Positions 8,533-20,343 of a DNA stretch of 64,000 nt are shown piece after piece. A program made the position numbers and the translations under genes. This DNA is from Anolis carolinensis (Eukaryota). The notes below the pieces were generated by a model. That model saw only the letters and a list, made by a program, of their open reading frames with translations, made no database searches and had not been told where the DNA came from. The first letter of the stretch is position 1; each line of letters starts with the position of its first letter. The stretch covers positions 23,795,190 to 23,859,189 of the forward strand of contig NC_085846.1 in NCBI RefSeq assembly GCF_035594765.1. Direction: 5' to 3'.

Positions 8533-10016
8533 TTCTAAACATTTTACACATAAATTAGAGGCTACAGGTATTCAAAAACACGTGTGTATCTTACTACTAC
8601 ATTTTGTATGCCTGCAATAGAACGCATCATGGTAAGGCTAGTTCTTCTGCACCAATCATATCATGTTGAATAGCTCAGCAATGGTATAAGTTGCCTAAGA
8701 ATATTATATAATCTCATTTCTTGGTGATTTCAGGTCTTATCTACATCTGCTGCAAAAAGCAGTTGGGGATGAGGCAGTAGAATGAACTGTACAATTGAAG
8801 ATTACAAGAAGAATATCATATTTTTGAATGCATCCCTATGCAAAGTCAAAAGACATAAAATATCCTCTGGTAATATCCACCTTGCAGCTAGACAAAACTT
8901 TCTTATTCAATGTACAGTTTTCTCCTGACATCATTTATTTATTGATTTCACATACCCGAGCATTCAAATCATGACTCCCCTTCACCAAATCTGAGGTCTG
9001 AGATAAACTGCTAAACTCTTCGTTTTAATATCATAACTCTTTGTTCTGGTGCAGTTATAAACCAGGACTTAAGTCTTGTTTGCCATGCTATACTTAACAA
9101 GAGAAGAAATAATGAAACTACTTAAGAGATGGCAAAGTAGAAATACAGGTGGATTGTGTCAACATCAAGCTAACATGACATCACAAAGTTTAAAAATGGA
9201 ATAGGAAAACAAAACAAAAGCATATTCTCAGTTTCTACTAACACCATATTTTTACAACAAGCAGCATGAGTGAGATGTGATTCCAGAGTAGTGCTTCTAC
9301 TTTAACTATTTATTGTTTCAGAAGTTGAGAGAATGTTGTTGAGTCTCAAGTGGATATTTACATCGCGCCAGAGGACCAAGAGAAAGTAGCATAGACAAAT
9401 AATGAAGTTTGGATGTTTTTCCAGATTTGCAGGATGGAGATTTTGAAGAAAAGCTTGTGTAGATTTCTTTTATTAATGCTAAAGGAACAAAAAGGTTATC
9501 CTCTTGAATTTAGCCCAGTGTCTTGCACCCTCAATTTTATCACTCAAGAATGGCCGTTTGAATATAGTTCAGGCATTGTATCTGGGCTGTCCTTTGTCTA
9601 AATTCTGGACCATGTATACCCTTATCCTTGGAAGCAAAGCAGTATTGGAAAGGGAGGAGATGACTGAAAGTTTTGTTGAAGCAGAACTCAGGAAAACATA
9701 ACTGTGTAGAAGGTATTGAAGCTCCTGTGCACATATTCACACCACACACGTATTTATCATGGTGAAATCATGAGCATTTTCACCCTTCTTATTTACTGTT
9801 TTCAAAATTTAATCAGACATGGCTTGTGTACTTTTTCTCTTCAACCATGATAGAGGAAATTTGTTTTTCAAACAAGCTGAAAAAGAATCTAAAGCCAAAG
9901 TTCTTCAGATGCTTATTTAGAATGCTAGACACTGCTAGCATCTCAGGCTGTTGCCTTGGAAAGTATTTGCAGTGTAATCATGGAGACATGAAACATACAC
10001 AGACTTCTAGTTTAGA

Positions 10017-11650: not shown

Positions 11651-13254
11651 AAAAGAACAAAAAATATGGAGGTAGTATTCTACCTAGTTGCTATTGAAAT
11701 CAACTGTCTATTAGTTTGAACATGGTCCCATTGGCCACTTTTTGTCAATGGGTGTGAAGGCACCACATTAACTGACAAGCATTTGTCACTCCCCTTTCCT
11801 CTGGTAGATCATTTTATTAATACATAATACAATACAATAACATCAACTTATTTGGTTGCCTGTTTGGTTGCCCTTCTGTGCTGCTTCCTTAGTACCCTCA
11901 GTCCTTCTGTGTAACATTTCTGGTGGACCTAATTGTCCCTAACTGTGGCTGATGTAATACATTTTTCAAAATAAGTGTATACATTTAGATTTGTTTTAAA
12001 TTTATTCAAGGGTGAAAGATGCAGAACGTTCTTGGCATATAGTTGACAAGTCTTCTAACACAGTTCTGTTTATAACCTGTCATGCCTGGAAAGTCAGCTG
12101 ATCAGCTTTATAATATCAAGAACACTTAAACCAGCAGTAATTTTAGACAGTCCCAACCTGCATTTCTTTCTGTCTGTCTGTCTTTCTTGTATCCTTTAAT
12201 AGGATCTTTTTTGTTTCTCCAGTTTCAGATATTTTAGCCATCTGGAGGTCTCTTGCTTTCTAACATGTCTTTGCACATCTCCTCTTCCTGTCCATTTCAG
12301 ATTAGAAGTCCTCTGACCTGTTGCATACCATGGGCTGAGGATCCTGTTTTCCCTGTGATTGGTTTGTCAGTGGGTGGGGCCAGAACCATGGTGTGTAGAG
12401 CGAAAGCCACTGTGACTTACATCCATCTTGGGTGCTGGGCCACCATTTACTCACCGTAATACTAAGCAAGTTTAAGTATGTGTAATTGCATTAGATTGCA
12501 TTAATCCTTTGCTATCTAGGAAGCTGCATTATATCAGGGAAACTTTCTTTGCTGTTCTTTAATCTACCCCAGGGCCTAAAAACATTGCTAATGCTTACAG
12601 TTTTAAAATTATTTTAAGATATTGTGATTTTTTGTGGACATGTAACCACCTGCAGAAATGCCCTTGTGAATCACCTGGAAATGTCAGCTGGCTACTGAAG
12701 AGTAGGATGTGAATAATGCCAGGCTAGAGTTAATACAGGTTTATCTATGCAAATAGTATCTGCTTTGATTGGTAGCAGATTTCCAGGGAAAGAGGAAGAC
12801 ACATGTCATTGGGGTCACATATTATCTGATTTTTGTAACTGAAGGTGCAACATACTGAGCCTGATAAGAGTAGTTTAACATTGGAAACAATAGATGAAGC
12901 AAAGCTTGGAAGCATTAGTGTCTGAATGATTGCTGCATGATCTAGCAAGTTGTAGCCCATAAACATGCTTTACAAGTTGTGTTTTTGACTTTTAAACTTT
13001 TTTTAAAAAAAATTATGATTTGTTTTTTAAACAAGCAGAAATGGGCACATCTAATAGCACCCACAAAAGAAACAAGAGGCACAGCTTAAATGTTCAAAAG
13101 ATGGTTGTTGTATTAGGAACATTTGCCTTTTCTACCAATACAACCATCATCTTTCGCTTAACCTATAACTTGCAAATTTGCTTTTCTTCATACAATAAAA
13201 AATGGCATTCCTGAGAAAATCCAGTGCCGTGCTATGTTCTGCTTTTTTCATGTT

Positions 13255-13508
13255 TCCCAGTGGCGCAATGGGTTAAATCCTTGCGCCGACAGGACTGCTG
13301 ACCGAAAGGTCAGCACTTTGAATCTGAGGAGCATTGTGAGCTTCTGTCTGTCAGCTCCTCCCCATGAAGGGACATGAGAGAAGCCTCCCACAGGATCATA
13401 AAATATCAAACATCCAGGCATCCCCTGGAGCATGTCCTTGCAGACGGCCAATTCTCTCACACCAGAAGCAATTTGCAGTTTCTCAAGTCACTCCTGATAT
13501 GAAAAAAA
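13255..13508 (+). mobile_element. tRNA-derived SINE (Sauria/Anolis-type head, Vingi-like tail)
   Basis: A-box-like gtggcgcaatgg, body shared with the copies at 51281 and 51739, A-rich end. Confidence 0.85.
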
Positions 13509-17429: not shown

Positions 17430-18038
17430 AAACTCCTGTTGATAAACTCTACAAGTTAGCTGGCATTGCCCCTCCTGACGTGTGACCGGAAGTTGCTGCT
17501 AACTGTGAGAGAAATAAGGTTGAACATTGTGAAAGCCATCCACTGCATGACTATCAGCCTCCTCCCACCAGACTCAAATCAAGGAAGGGCTTCATAAGAA
17601 CCACCACTCCTCTTGATGTTCCTCCAGCAGCAGCAAGGGTGTCCCTCTGGGCAGCTAAACCTGGCAATTCCAACTGGATGGCCCCCCTCGAGGGTCTTCC
17701 TCCTGGGGCAAACCAAGAATGGGCAACTTGGAAGTCCCTGAACAGACTCAGAAGCGGAGTGGGCAGATCTAAAGACAACTTGGCGAGGTGGCATTACCTG
17801 GAGGAATCCTCCACCTTGTGTGACTGTGGAGCAGAACAAACAACTCCGCATATGTATGCTTGCCCACAATGTCCTGCCTCATGCACAGAGGAGGAGTTGT
17901 TTAAAGCTACGGACAATGCGGTTGCTGTTGCCCGCTTTTGGTCTAAAACTATTTAGTTGTTTGTGATTTCCTCTATTTTTTTCATCATTTTTAAAATGTA
18001 TTTGTTATGCAATGCTTTTGACACGAAATAAATAAATA
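17430..18038 (+). mobile_element. 5'-truncated Vingi/Ingi-clade LINE
   Basis: C-terminal ORF remnant LAGIAPPDV...WKSLNRLRSGVGR...CDCGAEQTTPHMYACP, (AAAT)n tail, 11-bp TSD aggagctgaat (17419-17429 and 18039-18049). Confidence 0.8.
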
Positions 18039-18166: not shown

Positions 18167-18556
18167 CAGTGGTTTTCAACCTGTGGGCCACGGCCCAGCA
18201 GTGGGCCATGAGAACGAAAATTCAATCCATGAACCTCCTTCCTCTTTATTTTATTTTATTTCCACTCCTTTCCGCAGAGCTGACTTGGTGTCTTCATTTC
18301 TAAGCCTCTTCCTGGGGTTATTTGGGGTGCTGATTCAGAAAATGTTCTGTATCAGAAACCAAAGTTGATGTAGTCTATCCAATATCATTTTCTGGATCAG
18401 CACCCCAAATAACCAAACTGAATCTATAGTTGACCAAAAATCGATTTGTAACCCTTTTGCTACTAATGTTGGAGAGTGCTCCCTGGTCAAAATGGTCCGT
18501 GGTCAAGTGGTCCGTGGTCAAGTGGGCCCTGGGCAAAAAAAGGTTGGGAACCACTG
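18167..18556. mobile_element. 390-bp non-autonomous hAT element
   Basis: TIRs cagtggttttcaacct / aggttgggaaccactg, TSD ttatagtt/ctatagtt, subterminal tggtccgtggtcaag repeats. Confidence 0.88.
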
Positions 18557-18644: not shown

Positions 18645-18876
18645 TACATATACACCTTCAAGTTGCTTGTTGTCTTATACAAGCTCTATGAATTTTATAG
18701 GGTTTTCTTAGTCAAGGACTGTCCAAAGGTGGTTTTGCCAGTCCTTTAGTCTGAAATTGAGCTGACAGCACCTGGTATTTGGTGGTGGTCCTCGTTCAGA
18801 GTACTAACCAGGTCTCACTTTACGTAGCTTCTAAGATCAGATGAGATCTGGTGCCTTTCGGGTATTTAGGATGGCA
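18645..18876 (-). mobile_element. 5S rRNA-derived SINE, second copy
   Basis: Colinear with 876-1100; reverse complement contains ccagatctcatctgatcttagaagcta...cctggttagtact...aataccaggtgctgt. Confidence 0.8.
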
Positions 18877-18953
18877 TGATCTGAGAAATAAACTGAGTAG
18901 GACCATGTTCTCATCTAACCTTGTATAGATCTCTCAGTTTGGGAATATGTTTC

Positions 18954-18986
<33 letters not shown>
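18954..18986. repeat. (AAT)n left flank of the R4/Dong insertion
   Basis: Direct reading; a matching tract lies at 19857-19888. Confidence 0.95.
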
Positions 18987-19327
18987 TGTGCGGTTTTCTG
19001 GCATTGTGTATTTCTGCCGCTTCTGTGACTGTTCATTTGGGGTTTGATGATTCTGTAGCCCACTTGTCAATGGATGTCCAGAATCAGCAGCATCCACCGC
19101 GGTCCTTTTTATCCTGGGCGACGACCGAGCCAGTATAGACTTCGTTTGGGTTTGTTTCTCCATAATGCTAATGGGTTAGGTGCTCTTAGTTCTGCTCCTC
19201 AGCTGAGGCCTCTCTGGCTTGGTTGGACCTACCGGTAGTTACACTACCGCCAGCACAGCCCTCAGTCATCATTGGAGCAGTTAAGCCCCCCCCCCCCACG
19301 TCAAGGTGGCACCTGCGGGGGGGGGGG
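18987..19327 (-). mobile_element. Inverted 5' UTR and ORF start of an R4/Dong-clade LINE
   Basis: The minus strand reads a structured leader, then ATG 19163 MEKQTQ...KRQKYTMPENRTI, resembling the R-x-K-W/Y-T-x-x-E-N motif I recall from Dong/Rex6 N-termini. It sits inside the same (TAA)n flanks as the 3' part. Confidence 0.65.
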
Positions 19328-19392
19328 TGGCTCCCCGTCGGGGAATCGAACCCCGGTCTCTCGTGTGACAGGCGGGGATACTTACCACTATA
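19328..19392 (-). pseudogene. Retro-copied mature tRNA-Asp(GTC), nt ~11 to CCA
   Basis: Reverse complement TATAGTGGTAAGTATCCCCGCCTGTCACACGAGAGACCGGGGTTCGATTCCCCGACGGGGAG-CCA. About 3 mismatches to vertebrate tRNA-Asp-GTC, first 10 nt missing, CCA present. Confidence 0.92.
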
Positions 19393-19856
19393 TGAACACG
19401 CAAAGATACTGTGGGACTTCCGAATCCAGACTGACAAAGTTCTGGAACACAACACACCAGACATCACAGTTGTGGAAAAGAACAAGGTTTGGATCATTGA
19501 TGTTGCCATCCCAGGTGACAGTCGCATTGAAGAAAAACAACAGGAAAAACTCAGCCGCTATCAGGACCTCAAGATTGAACTTCAAAGACTCTGGCAGAAA
19601 CCAGTGCAGGTGGTCCCAGTGGTGATGGGCACACTGGGTGCCGTGCCAAAAGATCTCAGCCGGCATTTGGAAACAATAGACATTGACAAAATTACGATCT
19701 GCCAACTGCAAAAGGCCACCTTACTGGGATCTGCACGCATCATCCGAAAATACATCACACAGTCCTAGACACTTGTGAAGTATTCGACTTGTGATTTTGT
19801 GAAACGAAATCCAGCATATCTATCTTGTTTGCTGTGTCATACAACGTCGTTGTGTC
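19393..19856 (+). mobile_element. 3' end of an R4/Dong-clade LINE (restriction-like endonuclease domain and 3' UTR)
   Basis: Open frame KILWDFRIQTD...NTPDITVV...IIDVAIPGD...EKLSRYQDL...PVVMGTLG to stop 19768 (PD..D RLE motif), ending in (TAA)n, the Dong target. Confidence 0.9.
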
Positions 19857-19888
<32 letters not shown>

Positions 19889-19889
<1 letters not shown>

Positions 19890-20050
19890 TTCTTGTATCC
19901 TACCCCATCTCTCCGAGGGGACTCGGGGTGGCTTACATAGTGACCAGCCCAGCTATATACACTAAAATAATAACAACGTAAAATACATTCCAATTACAAC
20001 AAATTAATACATCAGAACTATAAAATCGCAACATCACATAATAAAATCCT
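19889..20050 (-). mobile_element. L2 LINE 3'-end fragment
   Basis: ccccatctctccgagggg...actcggggtggcttaca stem-loop tail, shared with the copies at 33894, 35638 and 39670. Confidence 0.7.
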
Positions 20051-20343
20051 AGCCAGTAGCCAAGGGGACCACAATGGCGATTCCCCCTGCATCTTGATTT
20101 AGTTCTGTTCCAGTTCAGGGTAGAAAGCCACAAAACATTGTGTACTGCCTTATTGATTTATTTAAAGCATATATCTCTCACCTGTCAATCTGCCAGGAGC
20201 CCCAAGGCAATATACAATGGATATGAATTACCTGCTCAAATCTGAATGGAAAAATGTGACCATAAAGGTGGCCTGTAGCTTAAGTGACATCTCTAGCTTC
20301 CTTTTCCTTTTCTCAGCTGAGTTTTGGATCATTTTTCTTGGTA

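Follow-up and report, generated by a model that had tools for sequence, protein, structure and literature searches.

Reverse transcriptases related to that of R2 are able to move from one RNA template to another. The R2 enzyme jumps serially between templates (PMC8594491) and copies whole tRNAs (PMC12140624). End-to-end jumping by R2-type reverse transcriptases is reported in passages of PMC8594491 and, according to PMC3774820, by Bibillo and Eickbush (2004), and the natural 5' junctions of R2 include one putative template jump (PMC3774820). In vitro, template jumping of the R2 type is well documented, and methods of RNA sequencing exploit it; few natural traces of template jumping are known from genomes, and most of them come from LINE-1. 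Twin priming, with its inversion and deletion at the 5' end of LINE-1 insertions, was reportedly described by Ostertag and Kazazian in 2001. It has been invoked for the primate chimeras of LINE-1 and tRNA, most of which carry the tRNA antisense to LINE-1 (bioRxiv 10.1101/2025.02.02.635956).

The R4 clade is present in Anolis carolinensis and is active there (PMC5389967). In Dong of Bombyx and R4 of Ascaris, HDV-like ribozymes cleave precisely where the element's 5' end lies and so free the TAA repeats that lie upstream (PMC3774820). Here we describe a locus of A. carolinensis at which an element of this kind meets a tRNA. It lies in a stretch of 64,000 nucleotides (assembly GCF_035594765.1, contig NC_085846.1, positions 23,795,190 to 23,859,189 of the forward strand), which we refer to as the window. 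Judged by its sequence, the locus is a chimera of a tRNA-Asp copy and two fragments of one Dong/R4 family that are inverted relative to each other, in the manner of a twin-priming inversion and deletion.

Anatomy of the chimeric unit

The whole chimeric unit is 865 bp long. Direct reading of its minus strand gives, in order, nucleotides 11-73 of a tRNA-Asp(GUC) (19392-19331), CCA (19330-19328), a run of 11 C (19327-19317), the rest of a Dong leader and an ATG at 19163. This agrees with the initial annotation, which had described a tRNA-Asp with CCA that runs directly into C11, a 5' UTR and the same ATG. The tRNA and the Dong 5' fragment agree in sense, both being on the minus strand, and no genomic sequence lies between the CCA and the C-run. 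With the C-run, the leader is 164 nt long (19327-19164); the part beyond the run (19316-19164) begins GCAGGTGCC.... The partner piece from the 3' end of Dong is on the plus strand. It spans 19393-19888, including 3' UTR and tail, and adjoins nucleotide 11 of the tRNA.

The Rfam tRNA model aligned with 19402-19331 on the minus strand at 26.3 bits (E 0.004-0.015), against a gathering score of 29. In this alignment the T arm is perfect and the anticodon loop carries GUC, which specifies Asp, and two pairs of the anticodon stem are broken. The tRNA had been called near-perfect, a description that is slightly generous. ARAGORN called no tRNA in the window; its silence fits a copy that lacks nucleotides 1-10 and has two broken anticodon-stem pairs. 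Relative to what we take to be the vertebrate tRNA-Asp-GTC sequence, the 62 nt of the copy show about three G-to-A changes, of which two fall at CpG. The boundary at nucleotide 11 (19392) was set by comparison with four other Dong copies. The A box is incomplete, nucleotides 8-10 being missing, and the B box was found intact, as first noted. In our reading, 19331..19392 (minus strand) is a retro-copy of the tRNA that has decayed; it covers nucleotides 11 to 73, the last being the discriminator base.

After base 73 this upstream partner stops at the 3' end of a mature RNA. The CCA (19328..19330, minus strand) that follows would be the end added to the tRNA after transcription. To our knowledge of eukaryotic nuclear tRNA genes in general, rather than of those of Anolis itself, CCA is not gene-encoded. 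A tRNA gene was also considered as the target site, as in LINEs that target tRNA genes; the CCA, the missing nucleotides 1-10 and the (AAT)n flanks rule this out.

The Dong ORF begins with the ATG at 19163-19161 and is cut at codon 59/60 (18986..19163, minus strand). Its 59 codons match residues 1-59 in P0266, P0273 and P0285, Anolis Dong ORFs whose first residues are MENQTQTKSILARSS...; the 5' UTR and the ATG proposed for this element are real. After these codons the reading frame runs out in (ATT)n; beyond it the minus strand has no long ORF. At the DNA level the 5' piece is 92% identical to a copy in locus L002 and 96-97% identical to one in L005; in both loci the matching sequence lies upstream of a reverse-transcriptase ORF and is co-linear with it. 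P0266 has 1137 aa and is one of 42 proteins clustered at 90% identity; it matches RVT_1 of Pfam (E 9e-31), with zf-RVT below the Pfam threshold, and its closest relatives of solved structure are R2 proteins (E 5e-31).

The 3' piece consists of the last 125 codons of the Dong ORF with the stop (19393..19768, plus strand), which is the C-terminal endonuclease region of a 5'-truncated copy on the strand opposite to the 5' fragment; of the 3' UTR (19769..19856, plus strand), whose terminus is ...CATACAACGTCGTTGTGTC; and of (AAT)10AA (19857..19888, plus strand), a tail or target microsatellite that forms the right border. The product of 19393-19768 is 87-94% identical in protein sequence to A. carolinensis P0002-P0004, and by eye a motif of the PD...D...K type can be read in it. 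In its DNA, the plus-strand piece shares 94-96% identity with the copies of L001, L003 and L004 (assembly GCA_035594765.1). Both fragments are thus parts of an Anolis R4/Dong-type LINE, a class that we assign from domain and protein matches rather than from reference R4/Dong proteins. The initial annotation had named an R4/Dong retrotransposon here. It had the family right, but of the element only the first ~340 nt are present in this part, in the opposite orientation to a 3' fragment that belongs to the same family. All 22 Dong 3' ends of the fetched loci, as well as the one at the locus itself, are followed by a microsatellite, mostly (AAT)n, with GAA repeats in L002. An exact 21-mer of the 5' UTR had no match in metagenome contigs.

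The left border is a TGTTTC(AAT)10AA tract (18948..18985, plus strand), a microsatellite of the (TAA)n type that Dong targets. At the left joint, the agreement between the window and L005 extends through ...CCGCACAATTAT and stops there. The last 5 nt of the tract (18981-18985, plus strand) form a microhomology as judged against L005: ATTAT is common to (ATT)n and to Dong codons 60-61. At the middle joint, the tRNA gives way to the Dong 3' fragment at 19392/19393, with one base in common, as seen by comparison with four Dong copies. At the right joint, the terminus ...CATACAACGTCGTTGTGTC(AAT)n recurs in the copies of L006 and L009, and the right border is therefore the element's own 3' end. A direct repeat TGTKTC(AAT)10AA stands at both borders, the left tract recurring at 19851-19888 with 37/38 identity. 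We considered this 38-nt repeat as a target-site duplication and dropped it, because its right copy is the Dong family's own 3' terminus. The left flank has no similarity to the Dong 3' UTR. Thus, no unambiguous target-site duplication surrounds the chimera, the right TGTGTC(AAT)n being the element's 3' end.

Several other observations concern the family and the neighbourhood of the unit. The proteins P0001, P0155 and P0156 were compared with P0266, the Anolis Dong ORF. Predicted proteins from two scorpions, Centruroides sculpturatus and C. vittatus, share 83-86% identity with this ORF over 270-481 aa, and a protein from the lizard Hemicordylus capensis shares only 66%. As far as these alignments go, the likeness between scorpion and anole could be due to horizontal transfer or to contamination. 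Short Dong 3' ends separated by (AAT)n form tandem arrays at L001:11428-11825, at L004:42315-43021 and on the minus strand of L006 at ~12063-13330 (counted on the reverse complement). The arrays hold at least two variants of the 3' terminus, ...GTCATAATAAAATAAT and ...GTCATACAACGTCGTTGTGTCAATAAT. A Dong copy of ~2 kb at L002:9232-11256 has true 5' and 3' ends but large internal deletions, in which ORF residues ~90-340 and some of the reverse transcriptase are lost; perhaps this copy is a deletion derivative of the non-autonomous kind.

In the window itself, 18760-18878 (minus strand), ~70 nt outside the insertion, resembles 5S rRNA (29.7 bits, against an Rfam gathering score of 38) and is probably the head of a squamate 5S-derived SINE. 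At 18312-18420 there is a long near-perfect hairpin, probably a MITE-type inverted repeat; several miRNA-precursor models that are unrelated to one another match it on both strands, with scores that all fall far short of their gathering thresholds. Further away, an ORF of 105 aa (17639-17956, plus strand) ends ...CDCGAEQTTPHMYACPQCPASCTEEELFKATDNAVAVARFWSKTI and has no significant Pfam match; we assume from its look that it is the C-terminus of another LINE ORF, presumably CR1/L2-like.

The 5' leader and the start of the element

Ten Anolis loci were fetched for comparison. In 8 of the 10 there are 5'-truncated copies only, and L002 and L005 supplied the two other 5' ends. The L002 copy follows (AAT)n(ATC)n and starts with C6 and then GCAGGTGCCACC...; the L005 copy follows (AAT)n and starts with C7 and the same GCAGGTGCCACC sequence. 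At these 5' ends (n=2 copies) there is no tRNA in the 150 nt upstream of the C-run and no CCA, and ARAGORN found no tRNA in either locus. As both copies begin at the same C-run directly after the microsatellite, the run (19317..19327, minus strand) is made up of the element's own first bases. The position of the C-run at the terminus of other copies means in turn that the CCA belongs to the tRNA.

The initial annotation had raised the possibility that CCA is the start of the element consensus. This is not the case: the other copies have (AAT)n or (ATC)n and then C6-7 GCAGG, with no CCA. It had also called for an alignment of what lies 5' of the C-run in other copies. That alignment was done for L002 and L005 and showed the tRNA junction in neither, although two copies are all that it covers. 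L002 and L005 may, moreover, belong to other subfamilies than the one with the 3' terminus found here, whose copies in L006 and L009 are 5'-truncated. From these comparisons we conclude that the tRNA copy is joined exactly to the first base of the Dong RNA. The C-run has 11 C here versus 6-7 elsewhere, and the G-run with which it pairs is also longer in this copy. This hints, as far as the three sequences tell, that the source element already carried longer C/G runs.

The leader appears to be a structured RNA. Its predicted fold has a z-score of -3.5, and a nested double pseudoknot can be drawn for the leader, with P1 formed by the C-run and the G-run (G12, 19286-19297), P2 by AGGUGC and GCACCU, P3 by CAC and GUG, and P4 by a long hairpin; the J4/2 segment of the drawn fold includes a C. 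For the comparison of candidate ribozymes we used 19164-19327 (minus strand) of the window, L002:9232-9385, and L005:8984-9086 and 9941-10000. In the proposed fold 96.8% of cells pair, versus 43-51% with slid partners, figures that come from only 2-3 copies. P4 has three compensatory pairs between the locus and L002. Rfam gave no match to a ribozyme family in the 5' UTR. On the strength of the modelled fold, we think that the Anolis C-run is probably the P1 strand of a candidate HDV-like ribozyme: the C11 run would be the 5' strand of P1, and the sequence 3' of it (19164..19316, minus strand) would be the body, with P2, P3, the 3' strand of P1, P4 and J4/2.

The candidate resembles the ribozymes of Bombyx Dong and Ascaris R4 in that the element follows a repeat of the (TAA)n type and forms structured RNA from its first nucleotide. 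Cleavage is proven for Bombyx Dong, whereas the Anolis leader is known as a sequence that has no Rfam match; and unlike in Bombyx Dong and Ascaris R4, the candidate P1 pairs two homopolymers, C and G, and varies in length. If the ribozyme is active, it would cut just 5' of the C-run. We infer from the fold and from PMC3774820 that any upstream head would then be lost from every transcript. This would be a mechanistic argument against an inherited tRNA head.

Origin of the chimera

We think it likely that the chimera arose in a single aberrant Dong/R4 retrotransposition into an (AAT)n microsatellite, in which twin priming was combined with a template jump onto a mature tRNA-Asp. The hallmark of twin priming is present: an inverted 5' segment (codons 1-59, minus strand) accompanies a sense 3' segment (the last 125 codons, plus strand), and the middle of the element is missing. 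The microhomology at the internal priming site is 5 nt. Because the unit has no clean target-site duplication, it is from the direct abutment of its pieces that we infer a single event, as we also infer the order of the steps and the jump itself.

Our model for this event has five steps. A first cDNA would have been primed normally at the 3' end of the Dong RNA, and the last ~450 nt would have been copied (19393-19856, plus strand). The other DNA end, ...AATAA-3', would have paired with AUUAU within codons 60-61 of that RNA and served as the primer of a second cDNA by twin priming. The latter would have been extended to the 5' end of the RNA, the C-run, an end that was probably made by self-cleavage of the HDV-like ribozyme. 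There the reverse transcriptase would have made an end-to-end jump to a mature tRNA-Asp, landing on its CCA-3' and copying it as far back as nucleotide 11. Finally, the two cDNAs would have been joined at 19392/19393, with the deletion of ~codons 60-1012. Precedents for these steps are the findings on R2 and on the primate LINE-1/tRNA chimeras that were cited at the outset.

The pieces could also have come together in two or more events. A 5'-truncated Dong copy may have been inserted first and a tRNA/Dong-5' cDNA captured later, for example during double-strand-break repair, or a longer chimeric copy may have undergone local inversion and deletion. The 865-bp unit is not bracketed by a clean target-site duplication and this family does pile up in tandem arrays at (AAT)n tracts, both of which are compatible with such a history. 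Yet there is no microsatellite or other filler between tRNA nucleotide 11 and the Dong 3' fragment, and the microhomology at the left end is typical of internal priming. Furthermore, the 5' fragment has no Dong 3' end and so cannot be an ordinary target-primed insertion by the established R2-type mechanism. We therefore regard a multi-step origin as unlikely. Still less credible is an error of assembly at one of the joints. The C11 and G12 runs and the (AAT)n tracts are hard to assemble and a false join at G/C homopolymers and microsatellites is conceivable, but the architecture makes mechanistic sense down to its microhomologies, and in 20 sequencing runs from nine studies of the one organism 51-82% of the sampled 31-mers of 18700-20100 were present. 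The presence of these k-mers argues against an artefact of one assembly, though it falls short of proving the joints. Of all the explanations weighed here, we give an artefact the least credence.

The initial annotation had left two readings side by side: a one-off jump onto a mature tRNA, or a Dong family in which a tRNA head gives an autonomous LINE a Pol III promoter. The evidence agrees with the former, in that the CCA is present, the junction is at the terminal C-run and two other 5' ends have no tRNA. The latter would make the tRNA-Asp a part of the transcribed unit of a Dong subfamily. Its B box is intact, and the comparison extends to just two other 5' ends, the copies of the subfamily with the L006/L009 terminus all being 5'-truncated. 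However, the tRNA is found at 0 of these 2 ends, the anticodon stem is broken, and with nucleotides 8-10 of the A box cut away the internal Pol III promoter is incomplete. Since CCA is not gene-encoded, such a head would itself go back to a one-time capture, and the ribozyme cut described above would strip it from the RNA. Thus, we find a family with a tRNA head quite improbable.

The junction may alternatively have been made in RNA, by ligation of a tRNA to the 5'-OH of a ribozyme-cut Dong RNA and reverse transcription of the fused molecule. Ribozyme cleavage would leave a 5'-OH that is, in principle, a substrate for ligation, and the resulting sequence would be identical to that left by a template jump. 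Against this, ligases of the tRNA-splicing type require a 3'-phosphate or cyclic phosphate, so a mature CCA-3'-OH is the wrong substrate for the known enzyme. Jumping from end to end, on the other hand, is a property demonstrated for R2-type enzymes, as the passages named at the outset report (PMC8594491; Bibillo and Eickbush 2004, cited in PMC3774820). We give ligation very little weight, and favour the template jump onto mature tRNA-Asp.

Relation to known systems and meaning of the locus

The closest parallel to the proposed jump is the template jumping of R2, which belongs to the same group of LINEs with a restriction-like endonuclease and whose proteins are nearest to the Anolis ORF among solved structures. 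The Anolis case differs in that it is a genomic fossil of a Dong/R4 element, that a mature tRNA would have been the acceptor, and that the jump would have taken place on the second, twin-primed cDNA. As in LINE-1 twin priming, an inverted 5' segment lies next to a sense 3' segment, with an internal deletion (here ~codons 60-1012) and microhomology at the priming site. The LINE clade is a different one, however, and in the Anolis locus the inverted part extends all the way to the RNA's true 5' end and from there on into a second template.

The locus also shares features with chimeric retrocopies made by LINE-1, such as U6/L1 and others, and with the primate tRNA/LINE-1 insertions (bioRxiv 10.1101/2025.02.02.635956). 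Each of these joins a small Pol III RNA to part of a LINE within a single insertion, a probable one in the Anolis case. In most of the primate insertions, as in the Anolis locus, the tRNA runs antisense to the 3' fragment of the LINE. The primate tRNA parts are mostly 5' halves (nucleotides 1-37), and the enzyme, L1 ORF2p, has an APE-type endonuclease. In contrast, the Anolis chimera holds tRNA nucleotides 11-76 with CCA, located between two fragments of the same LINE and exactly at the 5' terminus of the LINE RNA.

In sum, the locus is most likely a new example of a known enzyme behaviour, a one-off copying accident, and not a new class of element. Read in this way, it is a clean trace of a template jump for a vertebrate Dong/R4 element, in which the copy of a mature, CCA-ended tRNA stands at the first nucleotide of the element's RNA. 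The junction offers independent support for the start of the Dong RNA, at the same base where the cut of a 5' ribozyme would be expected.

It is conceivable, though a long shot, that the Dong reverse transcriptase often jumps from the ribozyme-cut 5' end to CCA-ended tRNAs, in which case some copies, or the subfamily with the ...CAACGTCGTTGTGTC terminus, would carry tRNA heads. If jumps were frequent in this way, the birth of a tRNA-derived SINE would have been caught in progress for a vertebrate LINE with a restriction-like endonuclease. Even as a single accident, the locus would bring together a LINE enzyme, a LINE RNA and a tRNA in one cDNA, which is the type of accident that is thought to spawn tRNA-derived SINEs.
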